From: Macrostomum lignano
Lineage: Eukaryota
DNA length: 64,000 nt
Assembly: GCA_002269645.1 (NCBI GenBank)
Contig: NIVC01001109.1
Span: forward strand, 1 to 64,000
Reading direction: 5' to 3'
Shown here: in pieces, positions 7,983-55,132 of the stretch
How positions within the stretch are numbered: the first letter of the stretch is position 1
Layout of the letters: each line of letters starts with the position of its first letter
Notes under the pieces: generated by a model
What the model saw: only the letters and a program-made list of their open reading frames with translations
Database searches by the model: none
Told to the model about the DNA's origin: nothing
Translations under genes and position numbers: made by a program

Positions 7983-9115
7983 TGATAATCGTCAATCCTG
8001 ACTCATTAATTGTCAATCCTGACTCACTAATCGTCAATCCTGACTCACTAATTGTCAATCCTGACTCACTAATCGTCAATCCTGACTCATTAATCGTCAA
8101 TCCTGACTCACTAATTGTCAATCCTGACTCACTAATCGTCAATCCTGACTCACTAATCGTCAATCCTGACTCACTAATCGTTAATCCTGACTCATTAATC
8201 GTCAATCCTGACTCATTAATCGTCAATCCTGACTCACTAATTGTAAATCCTGACTCATTAATCGTCAATCCTGACTCATTAATCGTCACTCCTGACTCAC
8301 TAATCGTCAATCCTGACTCACTAATTGTCAATCCTGATTCATTAATCGTCAATCCTGACTGACTAATCGTCAATCCTGACTCACTAATCGTCAATCCTGA
8401 CTCACTAATTGTAAATCCTGACTCATTAATCGTCAATCCTGACTCATTAATCGTCAATCCTGACTCATTAATCGTCAATCCTGACTCATTAATCGTCAAT
8501 CCTGACTCACTAATCGTCAATCCTGACTCACTAATTGTCAATCCTGACTCACTAATCGTCAATCCTGACTCACTAATCGTCAATCCTGACTCACTAATCG
8601 TCAATCCTGACTCACTAATTGTAAATCCTGACTCATTAATCGTCAATCCTGACTCATTAATCGTCAATCCTGACTCACTAATCGTCAATCCTGACTCACT
8701 AATTGTCAATCCTGACTCATTAATCGTCAAACCTGACTCACTAATCGTCAATCCTGACTCACTAATCGTCAATCCTGACTCATTAATCGTCAATCCTGAC
8801 TCACTAATCGTCAATCCTGACTCACTAATCGTCAATCCTGACTCACTAATCGTCAATCCTGACTCATTAATCGTCAATCCTGACTCACTAATCGTCAATC
8901 CTGACTCACTAATCGTCAATCCTGACTCACTAATCGTCAATCCTGACTCACTAATCGTCAATCCTGACTCATTAATCGTCAATCCTGACTCACTAATCGT
9001 CAATCCTGACTCACTAATCGTCAATCCTGACTCACTAATCGTCAATCCTGACTCACTAATCGTCAATCCTGACTCACTAATCGTCAATCCTGACTCACTA
9101 ATCGTCAATCCTGAC
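7983..9115. repeat. Minisatellite, 21-bp unit AATCGTCAATCCTGACTCA(C/T)T
   Basis: Direct reading; source of the spurious (ISESGLT)n ORF. Confidence 0.95.
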
Positions 9116-9213
9116 ACACTAAGCAGAAAAATCACTAATCTCAAGGCAGCCTCTTACCTAGGATCGTTAGGAAGACCCTGAAAGCTCTGTTGCCAGCTAC
9201 ACCTGGGATTGCA

Positions 9214-9762: not shown

Positions 9763-12700
9763 ATGCCAGTCCAAGATCTTGTCCGCTACCGAGACTCTGG
9801 CGAACTGTCCGACCTCACGGTCCGACTTGCCGCTGACGGCGTCAAATCTGAGTGGAAGCTGCACCGGTTCCCGCTCTTCATCAAATCTGACCGATTCCGC
9901 GAACTCCTGGCCGATTCCAGTGTGTCGGAGCTCGAACTCGAATCGGACTTTCCCGGCGGGGCCGACTGCTTCAACTTGATTGCCGATTTCTGCTACAACA
10001 AACGAATCGACATCTCGCCGGACAATGTCGTCCAATTGCATTGCGCGGCCGAACGGCTGGCAATGCGCGGCCGAGGCAACCTGGCCGACCTGACCGACCG
10101 GTACCTCAGCGAGCTGCTTGATTCGGCCAAGGTTGGCCAATCGGCCGGCCCCATTGTCGACCTGCTGACCAGCTGCGGCTCCGTCGGTCGGCCAACTGAC
10201 GAAACGAAACTCCCAGAGAGGTGTCTCGCCGCGCTGCTGGACATCTGGCATCGGGCAGAGGCTTCGGCGGCTGCCGCTGCCGCGCTCAGCTCTGATAGTG
10301 ACGAGCACTTCTACCGGCACGATCACCACTACCGCGTCTTCTCTTCTCCGTACTCCAGCAGACAGCAGCAGCAGCAGCAGCGCGACACTGAGAATCATCT
10401 GCTGAGCCTGCCGTTGCCTCGATTCCTTCAACTGATCCAAGCTGTCTGCCCGTCAGAATCGTCTTCAGCCGCGGCTGCCGCTACTACAGAGGACGAGTTG
10501 AAAGCCGAAACGAACGCCCATCTGCGTCGACGACCGCTGGCTGAGCTGGCCGCCCGCTACCTGGATCAGGCATTCAGCCGGCACCTGAACCCGCCGCAGC
10601 AGGCGCCAACGCCACCGGAGCGCGAGGCCGACGCGGAAAAAGATGATCACAAAGACCAGGAAGAGGACCACGACGACCGAGTGGATAAACAAGCCGACGA
10701 AAAATCCAGTGAACAGTTAACCAGAGAATCCGGCGTCGAAGTACTCGACAGGGTGATTCTCGCCCTGCCAGCCGACACGCCGCTGTCCGAGTCGATCAAT
10801 GCCGATTGGATTCGACGAGCGCTTCGCGTTAGCGAGACGGCCAGCCCGGAGTGTCGCGCCAAACTGCTGCAACTTGCGGGCGGCGCGCTGCACCGCTTCA
10901 CCCAGGACGAACTCAGAGACACGCCGGCCCCTGTACTGTGCGAGATTGTGGAGAACACTGTGAAAAATGACGGCGTTGTGCCCGAAGTCCTCTCGTGCGT
11001 GATTGACTGTCACCTGCTGGATCTGGCCCGGGCTGGGGGGCTTCCTGTGGCCGACTTTGTCAAACTGGCAGCCAGCATGTCGCCAGACTATCGGACCAGC
11101 CACGACACTCTGTACGAGGCGGCCGAGGCTCTGCTCTCTGGTGAGGCAGTCTGCTTGTGAAGGATTGGTTTGTGAAGGATTGGTTTGTGAAGGATTGGTT
11201 TGTGAAGGATTGGTTTGTGAAGGATTGGTTTGTGAAGGATTGGTTTGTGAAGGATTGGTTTGTGAAGGATTGGTTTGTGAAGGATTGGTTTGTGAAGGAT
11301 TGGTTTGTGAAGGATTGGTTTGTGAAGGATTGGTTTGTGAAGGATTGGTTTGTGAAGGATTGGTTTGTGAAGGATTGGTTTGTAAAGGATTGGTTTGTGA
11401 ATGATTGGTTTGTGAAGGATTGGTTTGTAAAGGATTGGTTTGTGAATGATTGGTTTGTGAAGGATTGGTTTGTGAAGGATTGGTTTGTAAAGGATTGGTT
11501 TGTGAAGGATTGGTTTGTAAAGGATTGGTTTGTGAAGGATTGGTTTGTAAAGGATTGGTTTGTAAAGGATTGGTTTGTAAAGGATTGGTTTGTGAATGAT
11601 TGGTGTGTGAATGATTGGTTTGTGAAGGATTGGTTTGTAAAGGATTGGTTTGTGAATGACTGACTGCTAAAGACGTTTCCAAGGATTATTCGAATTCGTC
11701 AATAATCCCTATGCTGTTAATCTCTGAATACATACTGTGATCCCCCAGCTGATCCGTTGCCGCCCGAGTCAGAGCGTCAGCAAGTATTCGATGCCCTGGA
11801 TCTGAACAGATGCAGCGAAGCCATTCTACAGCGGGCCCTGGACAAGGGACTGGTGCCAGCCCGTCTTGTCTGCCAAGCAGCCATTGATGTGGCCAAAAGG
11901 CTCCGGTATCAGCTTGAAGAATTGGAGAAAATAAAATTGGTAAGCCGTCTATTAAACTCTCAACTTCGCTTCTCGGGAAGCGGCGCTGAGCTGTCCTGCT
12001 CACAATTTTATACACCGTGGTCACCGTGGGGTGAGGTCACCGTGGGATGAGATCACCGTGGGCTGAGGTCACCGTGGGGTGAGGGCACCGTGGAATGAGG
12101 TCACCGTGGGATGAGGTCACCGTGGGGTGAGGTCACCGTGGGATGAGGGCACCGTGGGCTGAGATCACCGTGGGCTGAGGTCACCGTGGGGTGAGGGCAC
12201 CGTGGGGTGAGGGCACCGTGGGCTGAGATCACCGTGGGCTGAGGTCACCGTGGGATGAGATCACCGTGGGGTGAGGTCACCGTGGGATGAGGTCACCGTG
12301 GGGTGAGGGCACCGTGAAATGACCTGAATCACGTCTCCTACCGAGGAGACCTCAGGTATATATTTTGGTCATTCCAATAAACAGCTACGCTTGAAAAACC
12401 GTCTTAATGCCACACCACAAAATTGGTGTTTTTTTAATGAAACTGTCATAAAATATTCCTACTCAATAAGGAAAGCAACTGCAGTTATCGGAACGCCCGA
12501 GGGCGTCAGCTATCGGGGTCTGTCTTGGCTGGAAGTCGGCGCTATCATCCCGAACTGTCGGCCGTGAGTTTCCGGCCGGCACTGCAATCAACGCAGCGTC
12601 ATCAGTACGAGCAGTTCGAGAACTATCTGTCTTCGATTGGCTCTGGAGGAGCTGTTGGTACCACTACTTACAGCGCTCTATATGCTAGTAGTAAGTTAAA

Positions 12701-13777
12701 AATTTAATAAAGCATTTTACATCTAGGTTGATAGACTACTGCATTAGTAGCATTAGACGCTTCTATTGTTCTCCCAATGATTCCAAGTGCTGGCGCCCCT
12801 GGTGCTGGCGCCCCTGGTGCTGGCGCCCCTGGTGCTGGCGCCCCTGGTGCTGGCGCCCCTGGTGCTGGCGCCCCTGGTGCTGGCGCCCCTGGTGCTGGCG
12901 CCCCTGGTGCTGGCGCCCCTGGTGCTGGCGCCCCTGGTGCTAAAGCCCCTGGTGCTAAAGCCCCTGGTGCTGGCGCCCCTGGTGCTAAAGCCCCTGGTGC
13001 TGGCGCCCCTGGTGCTGGCGCCCCTGGTGCTGGCGCCCCTGGTGCTGGCGCCCCTGGTGCTGGCGCCCCTGGTGCTGGCGCCCCTGGTGCTGGCGCCCCT
13101 GGTGCTGGCGCCCCTGGTGCTGGCGCCCCTGGTGCTGGCGCCCCTGGTGCTGGCGCCCCTGGTGCTAAAGCCCCTGGTGCTAAAGCCCCTGGTGCTAAAG
13201 CCCCTGGTGCTGGCGCCCCTGGTGCTGGCGCCCCTGGTGCTGGCGCCCCTGGTGCTGGCGCCCCTGGTGCTGGCGCCCCTGGTGCTGGCGCCCCTGGTGC
13301 TGGCGCCCCTGGTGCTGGCGCCCCTGGTGCTAAAGCCCCTGGTGCTAAAGCCCCTGGTGCTAAAGCCCCTGGTGCTAAAGCCCCTGGTGCTAAAGCCCCT
13401 GGTGCTGGCGCCCCTGGTGCTGGCGCCCCTGGTGCTGGCGCCCCTGGTGCTGGCGCCCCTGGTGCTAAAGCCCCTGGTGCTAAAGCCCCTGTTGCTAAAG
13501 ACCCTGGTGTAAGGTAGATTGTCAGATAGAGTATAGAGTCTTCTGCACATGAACAAGACTCCGAAGTAAAAATTCAATCCCGCTAATCCCAGGCCGGCGA
13601 GACACCGACAACGAATCGATGTCGCATTTCGAGGAGAATCTACGCGCCGAACTGGGCAAAATATCGGCCAATTATGACAGCTACCTGGCCGAGAGGGCCA
13701 CCGGCGCAGGTGGCACCAGGTCTACTGAGTTCAGAGCCTCGTTCCGGAGCTCTGCGTCCCGTGGGAGACGCTGGTGA
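9763..13777 (+). CDS. BTB/POZ + NPH3-domain protein (NPH3/RPT2-like), exons 9763-11140, 11749-11939, 12471-12690, 13593-13777; 657 aa
   Basis: NRL-type BTB motifs KLHRFPL, DFPGGADCFNLIADFCY, NVVQLHCAAERLAM, NLADLTDRYL. NPH3-type C-terminal motifs DFVKLAASMSPDYRTSHDTLYEA and ERQQVFDALDLNRCSEAIL...VPARLVCQ. Three GT-AG introns with consistent phases 1/0/1 give a 1974-nt open frame. Confidence 0.85.
11156..11660. repeat. Intron-1 minisatellite, 15-bp unit TGTGAAGGATTGGTT
   Basis: Direct reading. Confidence 0.95.
12015..12320. repeat. Intron-2 minisatellite, 16-bp unit GTCACCGTGGG(G/A/C)TGAG
   Basis: Direct reading. Confidence 0.95.
12785..13505. repeat. Intron-3 minisatellite, 15-bp unit GCT(GGC/AAA)GCCCCTGGT with two variant units
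   Basis: Direct reading. Confidence 0.95.
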
Positions 13778-15057
13778 TGAAGCTGGCCCGTGTGACGGAC
13801 GACTTGAAAATACTGATTAGCACTAGTATGCGCAGCAAATATTAACTAGCTGAAGATCCATTATCATCACCAACTGAAAATCCAGAATTAGTAAAGAGCC
13901 AGGCCCTCTCAGCAGTTCCATACGCGTGAATTCTTTTCAGTTCATGTCTGTCTTAAAATCTCGGAGCCTGACTGCATAAAAAGTAGTTTTTCTTGTTTCA
14001 TGGTAAAACTATTTTGAATTAGAGTTGGCTACAATAATAAAAATGTTAGAAAATAATATCTAGCATTTGCGTATATACTACTGATCTGCTTACACTTGCT
14101 ATGTTTTCTACAATGTGTTGCTTGGGGGTGAGGTCACCGTGGAATGACCTGAATCGCGTCTCCTACCGAGGAGACCATGAGGAGACCAGGAGGCATGAAT
14201 GAGGGCTTGAAATCGTTGACACCTCCCATGCCCCATTCCCTCACACCCACCCCCTATGGCTAACCCGGCCGTTACGGAACGAAATGCCTGCTGGACCATA
14301 GACAAAACGCTCGATGGCTGCAACACAAGTTTTATGGTCGTGTATGATAAATACAAGGAACACGAGCTAATAGTCTATGGCCTGTAGGCTGAGAGACGAT
14401 AGGCTGAGAGACGACGAGCATTTATATTTGAGCTGTTTCTCTTTGTTGCATAAAACAACAATATAGTCAGTCTATACTCGCACTAGTGTTTGATTGATAG
14501 ATTCCTACGCGAATTGGGTAAGTAAACTAAAGCAAATGTTAATGTGTTTGTATTTATTTTGTGAGTATTTTTAACTAAATCGTAAGAAATTTATGATCTT
14601 GGATAGGTCCAGTTATTTATTATAAATGATGATACCTACAAGTATGTCATAAATGTTTTGGTATATGCTCACAATATGTCATTAGCTCATAGACAATATA
14701 TTAGATGTATAAAAACTTTCTTGTCAGAGGCCCTGCTGTGCTATTATTGACAGTTTCCTTCAGCAGCTTGCACTTCGACTGCAGTGACGATGCTATAGAT
14801 GCGTTTCGCGTTGTCCAAATCTTTCCATTTTTTATTTGGTCAGTTGAACTTGTCAAAAACTTTTGTCGATTCTGAAGGTCTTTACTAAGGTTTGAATGGT
14901 GAACTGATTGTTGTATGCAGTAAGAATGCATGGAGCTCATTCACAGGAACTAGTGTCACTCTGTAGAGATCTTGCATTTGCTTCACATGTCCTCACCACA
15001 CCAAACTTTGTGTGGTGTTCGGCAACGAAGTCCCTCTGCTAGACCATCTTTGTAGAC

Positions 15058-16276: not shown

Positions 16277-17020
16277 TCAGGGCAGAGAAAACTTCACCCA
16301 GTCGGCGCTCGTCTCGATCTCCTCCTCCACCTGAGTGTCGGTAAACAGCAGAAGACGGCAAGTTCTCAGCTTGCTGTTGTACAGCACGTGTCTGCAGTTG
16401 CCAGCACGCATGCCGGCCGCAACGCAGTGCATTGAGTTCTTCACCTGCAGCAGGTCAGTGTGGCAGTACTCCGAGCTCTCATGGAAGAAGCTGCGCTTGA
16501 ACTCCGTCAGCTGCCAATTGGCATGAGTTGGTGGTGGCAGCGGGTCGACTGTCGGACTCGGAGTCCACTCGCACGCCAGTCCGAACTTCTCCGAGCACTT
16601 TCGGTTGGCGATTTTGCCAAAGACAAGCGTGATGCAGTTCTCTACCGCACCGAAATTTGGATCATTATTGTTCCATATGGTGTCGTTCAAAGGCAGGATG
16701 CCGTTTCCGTTAATGCGCTGCCAGCCCGACTTGCTGGAGCCTCTCTCATCGGCCAGGTCGGTCACTCCGAGCCACACAATGCAGAAACAGTCAAGAATCG
16801 GCATGCCACTTAGCAGCAGAATCGACTCGAACGAGTTGACGAGCTCACCTCCGATTGACGCGCACTTCTGATAAGCCGAGCACCAGGTGTGCTTCTTCGA
16901 TGTGCTCACGAACAGGCATTTGTCACCTTCCAGGCTAAACGGATCAGGGCACGTCTGCGCCCAGACTGACACCAGCTGATTAAGGAATATTAACGCCAGA
17001 ATGAGTGTCGTCATATTCAT
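16277..17020 (-). CDS. Secreted C-type lectin domain protein with a C-terminal PAN/apple-like domain, copy 1 (247 aa, intronless)
   Basis: Signal peptide. CTLD motifs CPDPF...KCLF, TWCSAYQKCASIGGEL, VWLGVTD, W...DPN...ENC. C-terminal C-x3-C...CRHVLY...CRL pattern is PAN-like. Confidence 0.85.
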   Translation of the reverse strand: MNMTTLILALIFLNQLVSVWAQTCPDPFSLEGDKCLFVSTSKKHTWCSAYQKCASIGGELVNSFESILLLSGMPILDCFCIVWLGVTDLADERGSSKSGWQRINGNGILPLNDTIWNNNDPNFGAVENCITLVFGKIANRKCSEKFGLACEWTPSPTVDPLPPPTHANWQLTEFKRSFFHESSEYCHTDLLQVKNSMHCVAAGMRAGNCRHVLYNSKLRTCRLLLFTDTQVEEEIETSADWVKFSLP

Positions 17021-21096: not shown

Positions 21097-24000
21097 CTAT
21101 GGACGGAGGGTTGGCGCCGCCCAGGGAGGTCCCCCAGTGTCGCCAGCAGCTATAGTGCTCTCTGGAAAGGAGAGTTCAGCCCTGCGGGTGGCCCGAAGGT
21201 AGCGCATGAGCTGGTTAAAGTTTTCGGGTTTGCACGCTTCAGTAATAGATGTGTGTGGCCCGAGGTAAGTGAGTCTGGCCCGCGTGAAGGCGGGACAGAT
21301 GCTGACGAAATGCTCAGCGGTTTCGTCACCTGAGTTGCAGAAACTACAGGTGGCGTTGGTGGCGTTGCCCTGAAGGTACTGGTGCCTGGCGAAGCAGCCG
21401 TGACCAGAGAGGGCCATGGTGGCAGCCCGGATGTCTCTGCGCGAGAGGCGCAAGAGGAGCTTCCGGAGCTGGTGAGAGGGCTGAGGGACAGCGCCTCTAG
21501 ATTGCCTGCAGTTCGTGCGGTTCGCCCAAGTCGAGCGGTGCTGAGTCCTGATCCACGCTTTGATGCGCGAGTTGATGACACAGCCAGGAATCGGGACAAG
21601 AGGTTCGGGGCCGAGAGAGGAGCCGGAGGCACCAACTTTTGCAAGGGTGTCAGCCAACTCATTTCCTCGGATCCCCACATGCCCCGGAACCCACTTAAGG
21701 GTAATTTTGTTGGCGGAACCCAACACGTTGAGGAGTTTGATACAGTCAAGGACTGTAGCAGAGTTGGTGCTGCAGCCACTGATGGCGTGCAAGGCAGCTT
21801 GGCTGTCCGAATGGAAAATGATGTTCTTACCAGTAACGCCAGTGGCGAGAAGCTCTGCAGTGCAGGAGCTGATGGCCAGAACTTCATTTTGGAAAACACT
21901 GGAGTTGACCCCAGTGTATTGAGCGTGGGTAGCGATGACCCTCCCGTTCAGAAAGATTCCAACACCAAAGCCGGTGTTGGCTGACTGCTTAGAACCATCG
22001 GTGTAGCAATGAAGCTCACCAAGGTTCCATTGGTCATTGATGTTATCGCGCGAGTCGATAGCTACGGAGTAGCGTTGTCTCAGGTTGAGCGTTGAGGCAA
22101 TGCCATCGGTGAAGACGCGATTGGCCTGACACTCGTTGAGAAAGTTGAGGCACAGGTCGCTATGCGGGACAAGGTTCCGCTTAGCAGGTGCTCTCATGTA
22201 AATGAATTTGACGCCGGCATCAATTAGACGCCGCGTCGTTCTAGCCGCCTCACCCCTGACGAAGAGGTCAAGAGGCGGTAGATTAAGGAAGGCCCCCATG
22301 CCAGCAAAGGGCGTGGACCTGGTGGCGTTGCAGATGAGCCTACACGCTCTGCCTTGGATCGTGTTGAGCAGATCTGCATGGCTTTTGACCTGGGTAGCGC
22401 TAACCCAGACAACAGAGGCGTACGTAATGGCAGGTCTAACTACGGAAGTATAGATCCACCAAAGCCGCTTTGGGGATAGACCCCAAGAAGTGCCAAGTGC
22501 TCGTCGGAGCTGGGCCAGGATGGCTGAGGCACGCTTGGCTTTTGCTTTCACGTGGAAGGACCAGTTGAGCCGGTGGTCAAGTGTGACCCCGAGACATCTG
22601 GTCTGGTGCGCGAAGGCAATATCTCTGCCGTAGAGCTGCAGAGGACGTATGTTCCAGCGTAGTCTGCTGGTAAACATAATGGCAACGGTTTTGGGCTCAG
22701 AGAGTTCCAGACCTTTGTCATTGGCCCAGGATTCTGCTTTGCGGATAAAGCTCTGCATCAGATCCCTGAGCGTGCTGGGAGACGGTCCTGCCACAATGGC
22801 CGTGACGTCATCAGCATACCCGACTTTGAAGACGGGGTCGGGTCGGGAGTCACTCAGAAGAGCGTCCATGACCAGGTTCCAGAGCGTCGGGGTGAGGACT
22901 CCGCCTTGGGGTCCACCCTTACAGACTCTGGTGGAGGCAGTTTGCCCAAGAAGTTGGCAGTGACCGTACGGTTGGAGATCATGTACATGATCCACCGTAT
23001 GAGGGTAGCATGAGCTTTGCGATTTTGAAGGGCCCTCTGAAACGCTTCAAAGATAACGTTGTCGAAGGCGCCAACAATGTCAAGAAAGAGAGCCAGGGCG
23101 TAACCGTCACCCAGTACCGCCCGTTCAATCTTCTCGACAATCGCATGCAGGGCGCTGTCAGTCGACCTCCCGGTACGGAAGGCGTGCTGATTATTGCTGA
23201 GGGGCATCGCTGTCAGCTCGCAGGACAGCAGCCGCCAGAGAATAAGCCTCTCAGTGAGCTTAAGCATTGCTGACGTTAAGCTAATAGGCCGGAAGGCCTT
23301 GACGCTTTGGTAGTCACCCTTCCCAGGTTTGGGAATAAAGACTACCCGAGCTTCAGTCCAGCATTTGGGAACGTATCCCAGCTGGATAGAGGCCCGCATA
23401 AGATTGCGGGTGAGTCTCAGGAACGAGGGTATCTTGGCTGCTTCACGAAGAAGAACAGGGTAGATACCATCAGGTCCAGGAGATTTGAAGGGTTTGAAGG
23501 TTCTGACCGCACGAGCGATTAGGTCTTCAGTGACAATGCCCGCCGCTAGGGTGGCTCCATCCATCGAATGGTTGGGCTCCGGTCTAGCAGTAGGTACCCT
23601 CGGGAAGAATGTGCTGAGCATATGCTGAAGCACTTCTTCAGGGTCTTTAGTAAGAGAGCCATCATCTTTTTTGATCACGGCTAATTTAGACATTTTGTCC
23701 ATTGTAAGGGCCTTGACAAGCCTAGAAGTAGGTCTGTCTTGATCCAATTCATTGCAGAATTGGCGCCACTTACATTCCTTGGCCTTGCGCACTTCAGATT
23801 TGAAATTGCGGGACGCTTGCCGGAAAAGCTCCATGTCCTCCGGGTTTCCGGTCTTCATGGCACGGCGATGAAGGCTTTTGGCCTTCCGCCTGAGTTTCCC
23901 CAGCTCCGGGTTCCACCACGGCGCCGAGGTCTTGCCTTTGTAGGCGCGAGCAGGACAAGCCGCTACGTAGGCTGCAATAATGCAACCTGTCAGCGTCTCA

Positions 24001-24851
24001 GCCATTGACAGGTATCAATCCTCAATCCTCGCAGGATCCACATCCTCGCAGGTCTCAATCGGACATAAGTCCGTGAGTTCCTGCAGGTGCAGATCAAGGG
24101 CAGCCTTGTAGGCCGCCCAATCAGTGTTGCGGATATTGCGCCTCCAAGTGATCGGAGACTGGGTTTTAGTGTCCGCGATGTTAAAGGCGATAAAGCAGTG
24201 GTCAGACAGGGAGGGCTCCTCAGACCAGACTCTCCACTCCTCAACTCTGTCAAAGAGTCTTGAGGTTACGAGTGTGGCGTCGAGGACCTCGGTCCATCTG
24301 CCATTATTAAAGGTAGGAGTGCTGCCGCGGTTGCAGAGCATGAGGTTTGTGTTAGAGATGAGGGCCAGAAGCTCCTCTCCTCTAGTATTGGTGTCTTTGC
24401 TGCCCCATTGCTTGTGGTCGCCCCCTAAGCACAGCTCAGCGTTCTGGGACTCGCAGTACTGCGCGAGGCGCAGTAAACTCTCAGGAGCAGGGTCTCTGTC
24501 GCCTGGGATATAAACCGAGGCAACAAGATGCGTACGCGGAGAGAAATGATTAGATTGGATGACGCAAAGGTCTCCATCAGAGAGATCAGTCCTCAGCCAA
24601 ACCTGGAGATGGCTAGCAGCGAGGACAGCCGCTCTGGGGCGGCTGTTCCCCGGGCCACACACATAAAAATCAGAGTAGCCAGAGGGAATGTTGGGCAACT
24701 TACTGTTGCGCATCCAGGGTTCCTGGATCAGGATGAGGCCTGGCCTGTACAGCTCAGCAATCTTCATCAGATTTACTGACGCAGATACGCAATGCTGTAA
24801 ATTTATTTGCAGACAGAATGTCGCTCCTTTGGCAGCGTGGAGCTTAGTCAT
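21097..24851 (-). pseudogene. LINE ORF2: APE endonuclease (24015-24851), RT (22854-24005 and 21097-22995), RNase H, C-terminal CCHC; split by two frameshifts
   Basis: LQINLQH, IQEPW, SDHCFI (APE); FRPISLTS, FLDIVGAFDN, PQGGVLTPTLWNL, YADD (RT); YTDGSK, HSDSQAAL, WVPGHVGIRGNELAD (RNase H); CSFC...ETAEHFVSIC. Confidence 0.9.
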
Positions 24852-26274
24852 ACTGTATTAAATGCAATGTCTGGCTAGAGCCCCAGGGCCATCGAGGAGA
24901 CTTGGACAACAGATCGTCCTCGTCCCAGACCGCTGGGGCTTGACTGGGAGATGGGAGTTGGTCGACGTCCATGGCCTCCTCACCCCCACCGGCCCCCCCA
25001 GCAGAGTCCTCAGGCTCCGATGACAGGATGGAGGAAGCTTCCTCATCTGCATCTTTACCTTCAGACCCCGCCAGGGTGGCCGAGGAGAGCTCGGATTCCG
25101 AAGACCCGGCCTCGTCCTCAACTCCTTCTCCGACTGGCAGGTTTGGTTCCCGGGGCTTGGCCGGAGCTGTTACCGCGGTCGCCGAACTGCTGCTAGCAGA
25201 GGGGCGAGACGCAGCTTTGGCTTTGGGATCGGCTTGCGCCTTTCCTTGGGCCTTAGACTGCGCCCCGCTCTTGCCGGAGATGCCGGGGTTGGCAGTAGCC
25301 TTCCCTTTGGGAGGCTTTCCTCGGCGCATCTTGAGCTTGAGGGCACCCAGCTGGAAAGAGGATCCATTAGGGTACCGACTCGCCCAAGTGCTGGAAAGGC
25401 CGAGGACAATTGAGTTGCCCGTCTCCCCCCTGCGGACTTTGCGGTGATACACCAGTCCACTAGCAGGGAGGTCGGGGTTCAGACGCAGTAGGACCCGGCG
25501 GATAACGTCTGGTCCAGCTGCGGTGCTCTTAGCAGGGACGAAAACCACATAGGGTATCGTCTTTGGACGCTGGCCCTCGCGAAGAAAAAGAGCTCCGCCA
25601 AGGTCAGCATCCAAGGAGACCGTCGGTAGCCGCTGGAGCAGCTGCCGAGCGTCCTCCTCGCTGCTAGGAGCAATAAGAACGAATGTGCTTCGCAGCACCA
25701 TCCGCTCAATGCCGATGGAGATTCCCTCCTCGACAGTCAGCTCAATCAGATAGGAGTCAACAGCACTCCACACTTTTTGAAGCTGATCAGTGGTCCAGTC
25801 CTGGTCGCGACCTTGGATGATCACTCCCGGGATTTTGGCCTTGGCCTTCGCCGCAAAGGTAGCTCCCGAAGGAACCTCCTTGTTCGCAGTGGCCATTTGT
25901 TGCACCGTGGTTTCGGCCTCAGCAGCCGCGGCAGCATCTCCAAAGAGCGCCGCCGCTGAACTACTGGAGCTTCCACCGGCCGGCCCGCCTGGTTGCCTTG
26001 GGACTCCAGTCGCTTCAGCATCTATGGTGGACGCCGCCGCTTTGGCCCCCGCAGCTCCCTTCTTGGCCTGCCTTTTGGCGCGTTGTTTAGCGCGTTTGCG
26101 CTCAAGCCGAGCCCGCTGAGCTTCATCGGATCTGCCAGATTTGGCCGGTCCTTTAGGCTCAGAGCTCGCGGTTCCCTTAGATCCACCAGCAGAGCTGGCA
26201 GGTCTTTGGGTATTTTGAGTTTGGTAGCTCTGGTCGGATCTGCCAGCAGAGCCAGCCGGTCCTTCCTTTGCCAC
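24844..26274 (-). CDS. LINE ORF1 (gag-like, low-complexity flanks, ~55-bp internal repeats at the N-terminus)
   Basis: 476-aa ORF immediately upstream of and overlapping ORF2; start codon uncertain. Confidence 0.75.
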   Translation of the reverse strand: MAKEGPAGSAGRSDQSYQTQNTQRPASSAGGSKGTASSEPKGPAKSGRSDEAQRARLERKRAKQRAKRQAKKGAAGAKAAASTIDAEATGVPRQPGGPAGGSSSSSAAALFGDAAAAAEAETTVQQMATANKEVPSGATFAAKAKAKIPGVIIQGRDQDWTTDQLQKVWSAVDSYLIELTVEEGISIGIERMVLRSTFVLIAPSSEEDARQLLQRLPTVSLDADLGGALFLREGQRPKTIPYVVFVPAKSTAAGPDVIRRVLLRLNPDLPASGLVYHRKVRRGETGNSIVLGLSSTWASRYPNGSSFQLGALKLKMRRGKPPKGKATANPGISGKSGAQSKAQGKAQADPKAKAASRPSASSSSATAVTAPAKPREPNLPVGEGVEDEAGSSESELSSATLAGSEGKDADEEASSILSSEPEDSAGGAGGGEEAMDVDQLPSPSQAPAVWDEDDLLSKSPRWPWGSSQTLHLIQYD

Positions 26275-38390: not shown

Positions 38391-39920
38391 CTAAATGAAA
38401 AAACTAAGTCGGACGCCATCCTTTTCCAGTACAGCGGTAGGCTTGAGGTCGTTTGGGTCGCATGATTGCCTCACGGCTGGGATAGCCTTCGGTCTTTGAT
38501 TGATGTTGCTAGCCTCTGAAGTCTCAATGACGACCATACGCTTTGAGGAGGTGGCCTCAGTCTCCGACACAGTTCCGTACAGAGCACTCGTAAGCGAATT
38601 TGAAATTTGCTGTTTCCTCTTCTCAGAAATCCTTTTCACATAGCGGTCAACTGCAGCGTCAGTGCGATGGCCTGGTAAAGTGGGAGGGGGCAAGGTACTG
38701 AACTGTTATTTAATGGGCGCAGGTGGAACACAAGCACTTAGATGATTAACATAACAGGAGACAAGTTACCTGTAACAGTCTTGATTTCTCTCACACTGTG
38801 CCCAGCTTCTGCCAAGTAAGGTTACAACACTGGCACGAACGCAGTGGTTCGTGTACTCCAACTGAAGACCTGCACGCCGCGAGATGTTCTTCATCATGTC
38901 ATTGAGCGTGTTCTTCCCCAAGACCTGCTTGGCCGAGTACCAGACATCAGAATCAGCACGAACCTTTATGGGCTTTGGAAAAAGTGCCTCCACACCAGGT
39001 GGGAATTTGGCGAGATACAGTTGCACTGCCTCAACTGGACACTTTGAGCCACCAGTACTGAACATCCTCGTATGCTTTCCGGTTGAACATTGCTGAATAC
39101 TTGCCGCAGTCAAAGTCTTCTCAGGACCCGTTTGAACCATGTCGATGCACTCTACACCTTCGTGCTCGCAGAACCGCACTGAGGATACCTTCAGGTCCCT
39201 TATCCATTCTCGACCTCGGAAGCCAAAGTGGTAGACAATGTTAAAAAACACTTCGTCTTGCAGCCGCTCCGGGTCCCTTCGGTTGAAGTACGCACTTAGC
39301 AGGGACAAGTCGGAATCGGTGATGGCCTTGAATCCTCGTTGGTCTCCAACGGTTCGCTCCCTCAACTGGCAACTCAAACGCAGGACGCACGAGTAGGTTT
39401 CATTGCTCAGGCGAAATTGCTCATTCCCAATGACGTCAGTCGCACGTGTCTCAATCATGTACCTGTGCACGCTGGCTCTGAAGCCCCGGATCGCATCCGG
39501 TGCATACGTCTTTGTCCCCACGGCAGGATTTCCTTTCAAACTTACATACCAGAGGCGCAAATAGCTGTCGACATAACGCAGTGGCATGCGCTCAATGTCC
39601 TCAGGCAGTTTCTTCTCGCGGAGGAACTTCTTAAGTCGTTCAATGTGATTCCGAGTAGTAGCCAATGTCGAAGGCGACTTTGAGGATGCCTCGGTGTCCT
39701 TAATGTTTTGAAGTTCTTTCGCATCCAAGTCTCGTAGCGAACACTCCGGATCAATAGCGGAATTCAGGAATTCTTCGATCTCCTCGTGGTCCAGGACCGG
39801 CAGCCCAGTGAATTGATCTACCGTTGATTCTGCATGCATGGACAGTCGAGATATAAACTGCAGCTCAGAATTAGCCAGGCCACTAATATCGCCTGTTGCT
39901 ATCTTACTGAAATTGATCAT
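38391..39920 (-). mobile_element. Crypton-type (DUF3504/CryptonA-like) tyrosine recombinase gene; exons 38770-39920 and 38391-38671; one 1-nt frameshift near 38815
   Basis: Catalytic set in order: HFGFRGRE (R), YTNHCVRAS (HxxR), TG|HRT (H), VDRY (Y); also CPVEAVQLY and WYSAKQVLGKNTLNDMMK. A 98-nt GT-AG intron (38672-38769) joins VTG to HRTD in phase 1. Confidence 0.85.
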
Positions 39921-41534: not shown

Positions 41535-43780
41535 TTATAATATTCCACTCTCGTCACACCGATAAAGAAATTCGCGAACAGCTTGGATGTGGCTTTCGTA
41601 GTCGGCGCTTGCGATTATGCAGTCATCCACAATGTGGCGAGTATCTTTCAAGCCCTGTAGAGCACTATCCAGTCTCCTGTTGTAATATTCTGAGATAGAG
41701 CTGATCCCGAAAGGTGCCATTCTGAACATGTATCTTCCATAAGGAGTAATACATGTTGTCAGTGGCATACTGTCCTCGTGGAGTGGTACTTGATGGTATC
41801 CTTTCAATGCATCAACAACTGTAAACCATTCTGCGTTGGATACATTGGTGCTGGTCACAACTTCCAGTGGTGTTGGTGATTGGTATCGAGGTCTCAGAAC
41901 GTATTTGTTTATCTCTCTAAAATCTACGCAAACACGAATTTGGTCAGTGCCCTTCTTCGGGGCTACGACTATTGGAGCGCACCAGGGTGTCGGCTCTGTT
42001 ATTTTGCAGATAATTTGCTGTCTTTCAAAGGCATCGAGTTCGTTTTTAAGTTTTTCATGCAGTGGCAGTGGTAACCAGCGTGGCGTCTTCACGGAAAATG
42101 GGATCGCGTCCTCTTTGAGCACAATCGAAAATTTTTCGCCCTTCATCGGCCGAATTACTCCGTCGAAGACCCTCGGGAATTCTTGGATCAAATCCAGTTC
42201 TGTGTGTTTTCTTCCGTCATTCGTCAGAACCTGAGTTATCTGGTTTATCTGACTTGGAAACTCTTTAGGGATGATTCCCAGTTTTCTACAGCTCTGCCAG
42301 GACAGCACTGGCGCGACCAAGTTCTTCAGCACATCCTTGTCGCTGCGTGCTTCCCGTTCAGCGTTATTGTGGCGGAGAAATTGCCGTTACTCTTAATGAA
42401 CTGTCCACTGGCTGATTTAGGAAATATGGCGTCATGCCTTAGTTGTGCAACCCGGATTCAGAGCTTTTTGCAATCGCATTCTCGGATTGCATCGATATTG
42501 GATCCCGTATCGGGCATCATTTCCAGCTGCTCCCCATTTATCGAGACTATTACTGTTGGGGTTGCGGGTTCCAGTGTAGCAACCAAAGTTGACATTCTCG
42601 GTGGTCGCCTTTTATCCGGATGACCAGTGCTGCGACTGGACGGGCACATGGAACCAAAATGTCCAATGCGACCGCAGTTAAAGCACTTCTTGTCCTTGGC
42701 GGGACATTCTGAGCGCTGATGTCGCCCTTTACCACAGGCAGTGCATTTCTTTGCTTCTAGACTCTTTGACCGGGCCCCACCTGGAGTTTTTCCTCGGTGT
42801 TTGCGCACTATGGACACCTGTGAAGCTGCGCAGATTTCATTTTTTTGGATCTCACAAGCTTCCTCTGATCTACATATTGTCAGCGCGTCAGCGAGAGAGA
42901 GATCTGGCTGTGCTAATAGACGCTTGATTGTCTCCGGATTTCGTACTCCTAGCACAATTTTATCCCTCAGTAGGTCGTCGGAATGCTTACAGAACTTACA
43001 TGTTCGCATCAAGTCCCTCAATTGCATGACATAGTCGTTAAAATTTTCTCCGTCATTTTGTTGCCGTTTCCAGAACCTGTTCCTCTCTACGATGATATTA
43101 ACCTGTCCGAGTACGTGATCTCTGATGGAATTCATAACGATCTTTGGGTCCTTGGATTGTTGATCCGTCAGAGGTAGATTCTTATACTTTGAGAAGGTAG
43201 CAGATGTAAATGCGTTCAACATGCAAGCTCGTCGGGCTGCCATTTTCTTCTGAGTTACGTGGATGCTGTCTGATTCCTCGTGCTGGATGTTAACTGCATC
43301 GAAGTATGCCTCAAGAGTCGCTCTCCAAGCGTCGAAATCATCGATCGTATCCACTGATAGGTCTAGTCGAGGGATGTGCAAACCAGGCAGAGATAGTTTC
43401 AGCTCAGCTTGTCCAGTTGGTGAGATATTTGCTGCTGATGCTGCTGCTGATGCTGCTGCTGATGCTGCTGCTGATGCTGCTGCTGATCGTTCCGACTTTT
43501 ATGGCTTCTGCCTTGAAGGCGATGCCGACGTAGAGCGCTGCTGCTTTGGGGGCATCTTGTGGTTTCTTTGCCAGAAGCTTTAGCACGCGGTTTCAGTGCC
43601 TGTTTGCGATGCCATGTTATATGCTTTGGTATAATGTAACTTGGGCTGCTCTGATGGCGAGCCAAGGAGCTTAAAACAATATATTTAATCGCCCTGCCTC
43701 TTAGCACGTAGGCGGTGGAGGTCAGGGCCCTAGACATGGATATACTAGTAAGAGTCCATCCACATCAATAACGGGCAACA
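41535..43780 (-). mobile_element. 3'-truncated Ty3/gypsy LTR retrotransposon: 166-bp 5' LTR (43615-43780), gag with two CCHC knuckles, protease, partial RT
   Basis: LTR TGTTG...TAACA followed by TGG; CTACGKGRHQRSEC, CFNCGRIGHFGSMC, MPDTGSN; VDALKGYHQV, RMAPFGI, IVDD; stops before RNase H and integrase. Confidence 0.85.
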
Positions 43781-44132: not shown

Positions 44133-47100
44133 TGTTTGGGAGGTAGATTATTAACTTATTGATTTTCTTTCCATTGCATGATTTAATGTACTGCTTTATT
44201 CAGTTCGCTATGTACGCTGGTCTAGCCCAGGCCCATTTCACCCACCCCCACCGCTGGCTGATATTCTGGCTGACTGCAAATAAATATATCATCGAGAGGG
44301 CTTGCGAGCCCTGTGTACGGTTTACGTTTTTCGTTTTGTTAGCGTCTCGCTTGAGCCTCAGCTCCAAAATAGTTTGGCGGACCATCGGTCTTTTCATTTC
44401 TACAGTACATTTTGGTAGCAGAGCGTGGTTGGACAAGCCTAACTTACCACTGACGTGGCAAGCAATAGAAGCCTACTGTGAAACGAAGGACCAGGATGGA
44501 TAGTGACGACGCCAATGAGCAACAGCAGCAGGACGCCCAAGACGATGTCGGCGCGCTGCGTTTAGAGAAGCTGCGCTTCGAGAAATCCCGAAAAAAGGCA
44601 GCGTTCACTCGTTGCAAGAACAAGCTGTCTTGGCTGCTACAGACGCGCGCCTCTGACGACGAAGTGCAAGCTGCCTGCGACGCTCTGTCTGACCTTCAGG
44701 ACCTGGTCAGCGCCATCCAGGAAGAACTGCACCAAGGCTACGCCGACGCCAAGGACAACGAGAGGCGACAGCGCCTACTAGAAGAGATGGAGGAGACTGA
44801 GCGCGACTACCAAACTGCCATTCAGCGCGTCGAAAGTTCCAGAAACTGGGGATTGCAGCGCGCCCAAGAAGCCCCTCCTGTCGCGAGTTCAAGCGGTGAG
44901 AACGCTGCGGGTGACCAAGAAGAAGCAGCTGGTGAGTTAGACAAACTTTCTGGCAGTGCTGCGTCCAGCAAAGGATCCAACCCGAAGGAGCTTTCAAAGG
45001 ATTTGTGGAAGATGCTGAAGCGTGTTGAAATCCCAACGTTTAGTGGAGAAAAGCAGAAGTATGAAAACTGGAAGGCAGCCTTTGTTGCGTGCATCGACAG
45101 CGCCCCTGCAACACCAGAATTCAAGTTGCTGCAGCTTAGGCAGTACCTTAGCAGTGAAGCTTTGAAGGTTATAGAACATCTAGGACACTCCGCTGCTGCA
45201 TATGAGGCTGCAAAAGAGAGACTAGAGAGAGAATTTGGTGGACAGCGTAGGCAACTTGCTCTGCACTTGGAAGAGCTGGACAGCTTCCCGATCGTGCGAA
45301 ATGGAAACGCCAAGGATCTGAAAAGCTTTGCTAATCTACTGGATGTGGCTGTCGTTAACCTTGAGGATGCGGGTAAAGAGGCAGAGCTTCAAGATGGGAT
45401 GTTGTATGTGAAGCTGCAGAAAAAGTTGCCTGAGCAGATGGTTACCAGCTACCGGAGGTGGATCTTTGAGCAGCGGAGGCGGGAGAGTGTTAGAAATCTG
45501 AGAGTTTGGGTGCTGCAAGAAGCAGAGTTTCAGACTGAAGCGTCAGAGATTGTGCAGGGCGTTGCCACCATGCAGCAGGAGCGTCAAAAGCGAGAGCAGC
45601 GACCAAAGACTTTCGTTACTACGGACAGTGACAAGAAGGTACAGCATTGTTTGTCAAGGTGATCACGAGCTGTGGTCCTGCAGTGAGTTCAAGGAGCTTC
45701 CGGTGGAAAAACGCTGGGACGCGACGCAGAGCTCGAAGTGTTGTTTCCGGTGCTTGGGCCAAGGACATCTTGGCAGCCAATGTCGGCGCGGTCGTCGGTG
45801 CGGCATCAACAGCTGCACAAAGTTTCATCATCGCCTGCTTCATGCAGAAAAAGTGTTGGCCAAGTCTGGTGAAGCGAAGCAGACTGCATCCAAGGACGCT
45901 AAATCCGCTTCCAGTTCAGGAAAGACTGGACCGGTGACGCTTCTGTCAGCTGGTGAAACGGCAATCTCGTTACGAACGGTGCCTGTAGTCTTACGGAACG
46001 GGTCCCGGAAACTGAAGGTGAACGCCTTGCTCGACGATGCCAGTACCAGGAGCTACGTCAACATCGGGATAGCAGAAGCGCTTGGAGTGCATGGAGCGCT
46101 CGAAAAGGTGAAAGTCGGAGTCATCAATGGCCAAACAGAGACCTTCATGACAGCCCCAGTCTGCTTTAGCTTGGAAATTCTGGATGGTCAGACCAGCTCA
46201 ATGATCGTCGCCTTCACCGCCGATCACGTGACCGGGTCCCTCAAAGGCGTCGACTGGCACGAAGAAGCGCAGCAGTGGCCTCATCTGAGAAATGTGCCGT
46301 TTCCGAAGCTGTGTGAGCCTGCAGTAGTGGACTTGCTGATTGGTGCTGATCACCCGGATCTTCACGTGTCCCTCAAGGAAATCGTCGGACAGCCGCTGGA
46401 GCCAAAGGCGCGCCTGACTCCCCTGGGTTGGACGTGCATCGGTCGCACAGAGCAGGACAATTCTGAGATGCAGAACGCCCATTTTGCTGCCACTTTCTTC
46501 AGCTGCGATTCCGAATCTGGTCAGGTGGCTAAGATCCTGCGGCAGTTTTGGGAGATCGAGAACGTCTCAGAAGGTGCCAATCGAAGTCCGCTGACCGCCG
46601 ATGAAGAGAGAGCCGTCCAGCAAGCCAAGTCGTCGCTGAAGTACATGAAGGGCCGTTACTAGATCGGGATTCCATGGAAAAAGGATCGGCTGGCTCCAGC
46701 AGGCACTTTCTCAATGGCCTTCAAGCGACTAAAGAACACCGAACAGCGGCTGATTAAGGATGTGCACGTCTGCAAGCAGTATCAGGAGATCCTTGAAAAG
46801 TATGAACAGCAAGGTTATATCCGAAAAGTGTCGCAAGCTGAGACTGAAGGCCGCTGTTTCCTGCCGCACTTCCCAGTGCTGCGGCCAGACAAGGCTACAA
46901 CAAAAGTGCGGATAGTCTTTGATGCATCGGCTGCCAGATTGAACGACCAGATCCTCCAGGGCCCAAAACTGCAGAGGGATTTGGTTGACGTGCTGCTTCG
47001 GTTCCGCCGACACCCGATTGCGATCGCATGCGACGTAGCGGAAATGTATCTCCAGATCGAGATGGACCCGAAGGACAGGCCGCTGCACAGTTTCCTTTGG

Positions 47101-54394: not shown

Positions 54395-55132
54395 TCAGGG
54401 CAGAGAAAACTTCACCCAGTCGGCGCTCGTCTCGATCTCCTCCTCCACCTGAGCGTCGGTGAACAGCAGAAGACGGCAGGTTCTCAGCTTGCTGTTGTAC
54501 AGCACGTGTCTGCAGTTGCCAGCACGCATGCCGGCCGCAACGCAGTGCATTGAGTTCTTCACCTGCAGCAGGTCAGTGTGGCAGTACTCCGAGCTCTCAT
54601 GGTAGATGCTGCGCTTGAACTCCGTCAGCTGCCAATTGGCATGAGTTGGTGGTGGCAGCGGGTCGACTGTCGGACTCGGAGTCCACTCGCACGCCAGTCC
54701 GAACTTCTCCGAGCACTTTCGGTTGGCGATTTTGCCAGAGACAAGAGTGACACAGTTTTCAACCGCACCGAAATTTGGATCATTATTGTTCCATATGGTA
54801 TCGTTCAAAGGCAGGATGCCGTTTCCGTTAATGCGCTGCCAGCCCGACTTGCTGGAGCCTCTCTCATCGGCCAGGTCGGTCACTCCGAGCCACACAATGC
54901 AGAAACAGTCAAGAATCGGCATGCCACTTAGCAGCAGAATCGACTCGAACGAGTTGACGAGCTCACCTCCGATTGACGCGCACTTCTGATAAGCCGAGCA
55001 CCAGGTGTGCTTCTTCGATGTGCTCACGAACAGGCATTTGTCACCTTCCAGGCTAAACGGATCAGGGCACGTCTGCGCCCAGACTGACACCAGCTGTTTG
55101 ATGATTAAAAAAGTTAAAATTTGCGTCTTCAT
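54395..55132 (-). CDS. Secreted C-type lectin + PAN-like protein, copy 2 (245 aa)
   Basis: Nearly identical to 16277-17020 except for the signal peptide. Confidence 0.85.
   Translation of the reverse strand: MKTQILTFLIIKQLVSVWAQTCPDPFSLEGDKCLFVSTSKKHTWCSAYQKCASIGGELVNSFESILLLSGMPILDCFCIVWLGVTDLADERGSSKSGWQRINGNGILPLNDTIWNNNDPNFGAVENCVTLVSGKIANRKCSEKFGLACEWTPSPTVDPLPPPTHANWQLTEFKRSIYHESSEYCHTDLLQVKNSMHCVAAGMRAGNCRHVLYNSKLRTCRLLLFTDAQVEEEIETSADWVKFSLP

Follow-up and report, generated by a model that had tools for sequence, protein, structure and literature searches.

A BTB-NPH3 gene of the flatworm Macrostomum lignano and its relatives in other animals

The window analyzed here is a 64,000-nucleotide stretch of DNA from the flatworm Macrostomum lignano (contig NIVC01001109.1, positions 1 to 64,000). 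It contains one copy of a four-exon gene encoding a BTB-NPH3 protein, the architecture of the plant NPH3/RPT2-like (NRL) proteins, and this gene is almost certainly a member of an ancient animal branch of the family. The NPH3 domain has been called plant-specific (PMC1257465, PMC4327156, PMC11313873), and papers published in 2024-2026 still describe it so; full-text literature searches returned no paper on NPH3-domain proteins in any animal. An earlier note on this DNA, made from the letters alone, had made its claim of novelty conditional on metazoan orthologues not having been described already. Such orthologues are in fact widely deposited and automatically annotated, but no paper describing them was found in the full-text searches. 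The sequences themselves are known; what is new is an animal BTB-NPH3 clade with its own tail motif.

Joining the four exons (Table 1) gives a coding sequence of 1974 nt that begins at an ATG at position 9763, encodes 657 amino acids (aa) and has one terminal stop. Exon 1 alone is a 465-codon open reading frame (ORF), and the N-terminus it encodes lines up with residues 1-5 in all animal homologues. The three introns are all of the GT...AG type, with phases 1, 0, and 1. The intact frame, the exon count, and the consistent phases given in the earlier note are reproduced exactly.

The order of BTB then NPH3, which had also been read from the letters, is borne out by Pfam: BTB (PF00651) scores 25.1 bits (cut-off 20.5) at aa 9-102, and NPH3 (PF03000) lies downstream with 45.2 bits (gathering cut-off 27). 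The best-scoring NPH3 stretch, aa 411-482, spans the exon 1/exon 2 junction. Only these two domains were found when the 657-residue protein was scanned with Pfam, even at E≤10; BACK and Kelch were absent. The original observation is thereby confirmed, at a level far above chance. A full-length profile built from 52 plant sequences alone gives the window protein 175.8 bits, aligning aa 14-384 (115 bits) and then aa 411-560 (57.8 bits) with the domain order kept. The homology therefore extends beyond one motif to the BTB domain, the linker, and the NPH3 domain in its entirety. The same profile matches 103/103 sequences of the animal side, a term used here for named animal proteins together with the sequences from metagenomes and sequencing runs that group with them. 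The motif strings first quoted for this gene proved to be those of the plant consensus; the same motifs are recognizable in the window (LHRFPL, DFPGGADCFNLIADFCY, NVVQLHCAAERLAM, FVKLAASMSPDYRTSHDTLYEAAEALL...ERQQVFDALDLNRCS), but their letters differ. In a MAFFT alignment with Macrostomum-group relatives, the window protein retains all family-invariant residues.

Relatives were collected by a HMMER scan of 1.84 billion representative proteins with a profile of five Macrostomum-group sequences, which yielded 1103 relatives at E≤1e-3, of which 102 reached E≤1e-30. The best 150 of the 1103 were inspected, many of them metagenomic sequences. Word-indexed searches with the full protein or the five-sequence alignment gave Macrostomum-group matches only, low-complexity words having probably filled the candidate list. 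A profile trimmed of low-complexity regions did recover wider homologues; its best-scoring plant matches are At1g30440-like and Sphagnum proteins. Together with cluster look-ups, this search supplied the taxon names given below. The top ~60 of the HMMER ranking form a distinct non-plant group, beginning at residue 1-5 with M.DF..FR.SGELSD.TV....F.LHKFPLY.KSDYF and having no N-terminal extension. Typical plant NRLs start at about rank 61 (E ~1e-39), with N-terminal extensions of 30-100 aa and ...RRHSIS ends.

Carriers on the animal side span at least seven phyla, and many of the genes lie on scaffolds of 10-200 Mb. They include nemerteans (Tubulanus, Lineus), annelids (Owenia, Capitella), gastropods (Haliotis, Physella, Littorina, Bulinus), a cephalopod (Octopus), bivalves (Mytilus, Dreissena, Sinanodonta, Saccostrea, Argopecten, Ylistrum, Pinctada), parasitic flatworms (Schistosoma, Opisthorchis, Paragonimus, Cichlidogyrus, Hymenolepis), the bdelloid rotifer Adineta, the hemichordate Ptychodera flava, and the homoscleromorph sponges Corticium and Oscarella. 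Deposited examples are Haliotis rufescens XP_046334247.2 ("At5g48800-like"), Schistosoma haematobium MS3_00004798, and M. lignano BOX15_Mlig013387g2. Automatic names of this kind recur among the animal homologues ("At5g48800-like", "At1g30440-like", "phototropism 2-like"), the latter two being those given to the Octopus proteins. Named plant-side matches come from Ginkgo, Sphagnum, many angiosperms, and the charophytes Chara and Mesotaenium. No usual animal model organism or vertebrate appeared among the readable matches, absence from these animals not having been tested. Some animal-side proteins of ~560-790 aa are encoded on Logan sequencing-run contigs of 1.9-2.8 kb; these contigs are most simply read as spliced transcripts, because in Haliotis, Schistosoma, and Ptychodera the intron-containing genes occupy 5-9 kb of genomic DNA. 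The sponge genes (Corticium candelabrum, Oscarella lobularis) are intronless and stand in tandem arrays (locus L007, 1001-3211 and 3964+; locus L011, 1001-2695 and 2776+). Their NPH3 part is highly diverged, such that Pfam sees BTB alone or a faint NPH3.

A neighbor-joining tree, unrooted and with 100 bootstraps, was computed from 112 near-full-length sequences among the top 150 matches (438 columns). The plant/animal bipartition is recovered in 100/100 bootstraps, with all streptophytes in one clan and all animal-side sequences in the other, and the animal sequences are thus not nested in any land-plant NRL subfamily. Further groups are the sponges (100/100), the land plants without Chara and Mesotaenium (98/100), and all flatworms (80/100). 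The window protein groups with the flatworm sequences, outside the plant clade.

Exon structures were mapped on the genomic loci of relatives. The phase-1 intron at aa 459/460 of the window protein (...EALLS/ADP...) is common to Schistosoma haematobium, Tubulanus polymorphus, Haliotis cracherodii, and Ptychodera flava, in one alignment column (±1 residue) and in the same phase. Its presence in spiralians and a hemichordate implies that it already existed, at the latest, in the ancestor of protostomes and deuterostomes. In the two closest relatives outside M. lignano the ORFs also stop at this site, and neither of the two Chara genes examined has an intron there. A candidate plant-animal shared intron in the BTB domain was rejected: in the M. 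lignano paralogue P0002 it is in phase 2 at codon R88, whereas in the Chara gene P0134 it is in phase 1 and 2-3 codons later. Neither of these introns occurs in the window gene.

The tree and the shared intron together rule out one reading that the earlier note had entertained, transfer from plants or algae followed by intronization in this lineage, and support its other proposal, an overlooked ancient animal branch of the family; the homologues in sponges, Spiralia and a hemichordate, the 100/100 split, and the bilaterian-age intron all speak for the latter. More broadly, the recent horizontal acquisition of an NRL gene by Macrostomum or the flatworms from a plant or alga, with introns gained later, would agree with a family otherwise described from plants alone (PMC1257465, PMC4327156, PMC11313873) and with a full-length domain order equal to that of plant NRLs. 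It would not agree with homologues on chromosome-scale scaffolds in at least seven animal phyla, with animal-side sequences that never nest in plants, with the clustering of the flatworms, or with an intron that molluscs, nemerteans, and a hemichordate have and two Chara genes lack. Such a transfer is therefore judged extremely improbable.

A much older event has to be taken more seriously. Instead of common eukaryotic descent, a single transfer in the deep past may account for the link with plants, with an early streptophyte alga and a stem or early animal as donor and recipient or the reverse. Among the named matches within the best 150 of 1103 there are only streptophytes (land plants, Chara, Mesotaenium) and animals, which favors such a transfer on parsimony, as vertical descent would require losses in many other eukaryotic lineages; in addition, charophyte BTB motifs (HKFPLYSK[ST][DE]YF) look closer to the animal motifs than those of land plants do. 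However, the inspected set is a small part of the matches, with many metagenomic sequences in it, and a root separating the two clans would suit the unrooted tree equally well. There is also a hint of other carriers in P0117, an Ala/Gly/Arg-rich relative on a JGI metagenome contig of 1174 bp with an animal-type start and the end ...TTRW, which could mark a carrier outside animals and plants. The old transfer is accordingly regarded as a substantial possibility, of somewhat less than even probability.

The two closest relatives outside M. lignano share 80% aa identity. Since their synonymous rate (dS) is saturated, the ratio of nonsynonymous to synonymous rates (dN/dS) is not computable, and proportions of nonsynonymous and synonymous differences are reported instead (pN 0.12, pS 0.81); these indicate purifying selection in that pair. 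In the tree, the flatworm genes behave as vertically inherited.

The best database match to the window protein is UniProt A0A1I8J8Q3, an M. lignano "NPH3 domain-containing protein" with 99% identity, 373 aa long and without the BTB domain. M. lignano has at least three paralogue groups, and the window gene belongs to one of them; by BLASTP the paralogues share 40-43% identity with it, and in the MAFFT alignment 45-48%. Their scaffolds measure 721 kb and 883 kb. The database match, the paralogue scaffolds, and the metazoan retroelements in the window indicate that the host is the flatworm and that the gene belongs to its genome. Contamination was considered and rejected, as the flanking ORFs are of retrotransposon or repeat type and the paralogues lie on 0.7-0.9 Mb M. 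lignano scaffolds. Introns 1, 2, and 3 all recur at the same position and in the same phase in paralogue P0002. The extra phase-2 intron of P0002 at codon R88 (L003 10277-11341) is packed with TAGATCATTAGCTAGATGGATTA-type repeats. The window gene lacks it, indicating intron gain or loss between paralogues. Ala/His/Gln-rich insertions at aa 165-206 and aa 229-250 distinguish the window copy from the paralogues. It also carries an acidic insert (aa 276-306), at whose site the paralogues carry acidic or Q-rich inserts of their own.

In a repeat-rich, recently duplicated genome the window copy might also be a non-functional duplicate. Its introns are swollen by minisatellites, its neighborhood is rich in transposons, the His/Gln/Ala-rich insertions are specific to its lineage, and several public M. 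lignano family models (P0005, P0008) are frameshifted or truncated. Against this, the 657-codon frame is intact across four exons with canonical splice sites, the family-invariant residues and the C-terminal RRW are retained, and the predicted structure is confident. A pseudogene is thus very unlikely.

The C-terminus sets the animal proteins apart. Among the 31 animal-side proteins in which the NPH3 end and tail are present, 16 finish in W, Y, or F, and 13 of these 16 have a basic residue within the two preceding positions. Examples are ...SRKW, ...SRRW, ...GRRW, ...SHRY, ...SQRY, ...YHRF, ...TYRY, and ...PTKW, often after a YFPY-like stretch. The plant-type end R.[ST].[ST] occurs in 23 of 52 plant proteins and in 0/31 animal-side ones; the window protein ends in ...SRGRRW. 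Its last 20 residues hold six Arg, one Glu, two Phe, and one Trp, compatible with a polybasic membrane anchor, and the Arg/aromatic-rich end FRASFRSSASRGRRW accounts for five of the Arg, two Phe, and the Trp. In plants, the RxS serine is a phototropin/AGC-kinase site that recruits 14-3-3 proteins and frees NPH3 from the membrane, to which it binds by means of a polybasic, amphipathic C-terminal region and acidic phospholipids (PMC8531357, PMC8531446, PMC13017905). The terminal letters ...RSSASRGRRW had been read correctly in the earlier note, but the weak resemblance it saw to the RxS tail does not hold; at the level of sequence, the animal tail is a distinct motif of about half the clade.

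An AlphaFold2 model of the window protein, built from a 73-sequence alignment, has a mean predicted local distance difference test score (pLDDT) of 82 and a predicted template modeling score (pTM) of 0.73, and comprises a BTB domain (aa 1-105), a helical scaffold, and a disordered tail. In Foldseek searches against the PDB, the BTB part resembles the BTB domains of BCL6, ZBTB, and KEAP1 (TMt 0.7-0.8, root-mean-square deviation ~2 Å). Positions 7-202 of the family profile align with KLHL3 BTB-BACK (4hxi, E=4e-9), and the vaccinia A55 BTB-BACK in its Cul3 complex (6i2m) was matched by Foldseek over 161 columns. Full-length fold matches were designed helical proteins with TM <0.2 and were dismissed as meaningless. 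The all-helical domain is predicted to run up to a long helix, aa 497-536; beyond this helix, pLDDT is <50 at aa 539-604 and 636-657, and the tail is disordered save for an acidic helix at aa 604-633.

By analogy with known systems, and as the earlier note had conjectured with regard to CUL3, the protein may act as a CUL3 adaptor and membrane scaffold, a proposal put forward tentatively and with a little less than even confidence. The long-form BTB domain would dimerize and, together with the 3-box/BACK-like helices, would recruit CUL3 in the manner of BTB-BACK adaptors and of Arabidopsis NPH3, which according to a statement cited in PMC13017905 acts with CUL3 as CRL3(NPH3). The rigid, all-helical NPH3 domain and its terminal long helix may serve as the platform for a partner or substrate. 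The disordered Ser/Tyr-rich tail, with FRASFRSSASRGRRW at its end, could set localization, plausibly by binding acidic lipids of the membrane, which is how the polybasic C-terminus works in plant NPH3; alternatively, this end may be a C-terminal docking motif. The tail might be regulated by phosphorylation, and would work without the plant phototropin/AGC-kinase RxS phosphoswitch and 14-3-3 release.

A different core activity can be envisaged, in which the NPH3 domain would be an atypical GTPase or a Rab/SNARE-interacting trafficking factor, like Arabidopsis NRL5, and the BTB domain would serve for oligomerization only. Eight plant NPH3-domain proteins (NRL5 and seven others, including NPH3) are reported to show GTPase activity, which is kept without BTB (PMC11313873), and the NPH3 blocks common to plants and animals (D.YL.E.A...L....F..LA...P..R..HD.LY) are all present in the window protein. 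However, the activity comes from that one study, which defines no sequence signature, and the combination of BTB and 3-box is typical of CUL3 adaptors. For the animal protein this alternative appears unlikely, if far from negligible.

On balance, the explanation favored here is an intact M. lignano nuclear gene of an old, vertically inherited metazoan BTB-NPH3 branch, including the proposed adaptor and tail mechanism; taken as a whole it is considered moderately probable. Several points weigh against it. The exon joins are predicted from DNA, and the sole public model, A0A1I8J8Q3 (P0001), is a 373-aa fragment running into intron 2. The tree is an unrooted neighbor-joining tree of the top 150 matches. 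The position of the Φ-x-E motif, V54-S55-E56 in the window protein, is not kept in the paralogues; the looser pattern Φ-x-[DE], found in 64 of 88 animal-side sequences and in 17 of 21 plant ones, is too unspecific to be informative. Only about half of the animal-side proteins end in an aromatic residue, some of the others being poor gene models. The helical NPH3 domain has no solved structure or structural analogue, as judged by sequence profile and by Foldseek against the PDB, and its suggested role is for this reason drawn by analogy with plants. Finally, the plant NPH3 domain has been reported as a trafficking-linked GTPase, which would be a different core activity (PMC11313873).

The animal clade, the bilaterian-age intron, and the purifying selection seen in one close pair imply that the "plant-specific" statement is wrong. 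For plant biologists, the animal clade offers an outgroup: the shared BTB, 3-box, and NPH3 blocks should carry the core function, and the RxS/14-3-3 switch is a plant addition. For animal biology, it represents an uncharacterized BTB family in sponges, molluscs, annelids, rotifers, free-living and parasitic flatworms, and a hemichordate. Should the vertebrate hosts of the parasites (Schistosoma, Opisthorchis, Paragonimus, Hymenolepis) really lack the family, its function in these worms would be worth knowing. It is tempting to speculate, on the doubtful side of the scale, that the BTB-NPH3 module was not a plant invention but an ancestral membrane-associated scaffold (a CRL3 adaptor and/or atypical GTPase) predating bilaterians and perhaps the plant-animal split, to which plants would have added phototropin/AGC coupling via the RxS tail and animals a basic-aromatic output or anchor. 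Sponges, Spiralia, and hemichordates would be the animals that have kept it. If so, tractable animals such as Macrostomum, for which RNA interference and transgenesis are available, would provide an independent system for the core biochemistry of NPH3.

Table 1. Features of the M. lignano BTB-NPH3 gene and predicted protein, in window coordinates (HMM, hidden Markov model)
Feature	Position	Strand	Remarks
Exon 1	9763..11140	+	aa 1-459 + 1 base; BTB domain, 3-box/BACK-like helices, bulk of NPH3 domain; uninterrupted ORF from ATG; donor CTCTG/gtgagg
BTB/POZ domain, long form, N-terminal helix aa 4-12	9787..10068	+	aa 9-102; PF00651; AlphaFold2 pLDDT 94-98
3-box/BACK-like helical pair or hairpins	10081..10293	+	aa 107-177; immediately after BTB; AlphaFold2 helices 107-125, 129-141, 143-148, 150-177
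NPH3 domain, exon-1 part, all helical	10375..11140	+	aa ~205-459; plant-only HMM aligns through LLsLPlprF, vLdrvilaLPad, CRakL; AlphaFold2 pLDDT >90 outside insert
Acidic low-complexity insert within NPH3 domain	10588..10680	+	aa 276-306; predicted disordered; no secondary structure in AlphaFold2 model, pLDDT ~50-65
Intron 1	11141..11748	+	phase 1; mainly 15-mer minisatellite at 11155-11656, 33.5 copies
Exon 2	11749..11939	+	aa 460-523; NPH3 domain end, long helix start
Intron 2	11940..12470	+	phase 0; 16-mer minisatellite at 12019-12316, x19
Exon 3	12471..12690	+	aa 524-596 + 1 base; disordered Ser/Gly/Tyr-rich tail; acceptor aataag/GAAAGC, donor CTAGTA/gtaagt
Intron 3	12691..13592	+	phase 1; 15-mer minisatellite at 12787-13496, 47 copies
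Exon 4	13593..13777	+	aa 597-657 + TGA stop; helix 604-633, basic tail
RGRRW, basic-aromatic C-terminal end	13760..13774	+	end type found in about half of animal clade
AATAAA	14036..14041	+	259 nt past stop; sole poly(A)-signal-like hexamer in ~620 nt downstream of stop

The AATAAA hexamer may be the real poly(A) signal of the gene. Minisatellites make up most of each intron, and another lies upstream of the gene, where a 21-mer is repeated 54 times at 7986-9122. The array of intron 3 forms an open (GAPGA)n frame of 246 aa, which could mislead gene finders. A 52-nt segment of intron 2 (12300-12351) recurs in the 3' flank (14125-14176) with 94% identity; both copies adjoin GGTCACCGTGGGGTGA-type repeats, and the segment may be a small mobile element seeding this minisatellite.

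Elsewhere in the window, a retrotransposon of the long interspersed nuclear element type lies at 21097-26274 (-), its long frames encoding an ORF1-like protein, an endonuclease (PF14529/PF03372), reverse transcriptase, and RNase H. A BEL/Pao long terminal repeat retrotransposon at 44478-49585 (+) has gag-like, Peptidase_A17, reverse transcriptase, integrase, and DUF5641 parts, and a second retroelement fragment at 41535-43381 (-) has reverse transcriptase and a gag-like zinc-knuckle ORF. An ORF with DUF3504, which we take to be a domain of Crypton and tyrosine-recombinase-related elements, is found at 38766-39920 (-), and a single-exon fragment of the carboxylesterase family (PF00135, 28.9 bits) at 59040-59573 (+). 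Two near-identical ORFs of 245-247 aa, 38 kb apart (16277-17020 and 54395-55132, both -), are cysteine-rich with an N-terminal hydrophobic stretch that by eye is signal-peptide-like. They have no Pfam match, and a WLGVTD...W..NG stretch looks C-type-lectin-like; their near-identity suggests a segmental duplication.

Three known groups of proteins invite comparison with the window protein. It shares with plant NRLs (Arabidopsis NPH3, RPT2, the NPY/MAB4 clade, At1g30440-type proteins) the order of BTB domain, helical linker, complete NPH3 domain, long helix, and disordered basic tail. In contrast to them, it falls in a separate clan, has no N-terminal extension before the BTB domain, and ends in a basic-aromatic motif in place of the RxS/14-3-3 motif; the upstream partners of the plant proteins, phototropins and AGCVIII kinases, are to our knowledge not known in animals. 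The deposited, uncharacterized BTB-NPH3 proteins of other animals and of M. lignano itself resemble it in the start at residue 1-5, in the phase-1 intron and, in about half of them, in the C-terminal end. With the BTB-BACK(-Kelch) CUL3 adaptors (KLHL3, KEAP1, KBTBD, and poxvirus A55) it has in common, by both profile and structure, a long-form BTB domain and 3-box/BACK-like helices over ~150-200 residues. It differs from these adaptors in giving no Pfam match to BACK or Kelch and in having, as its C-terminal module, the NPH3 helical domain.

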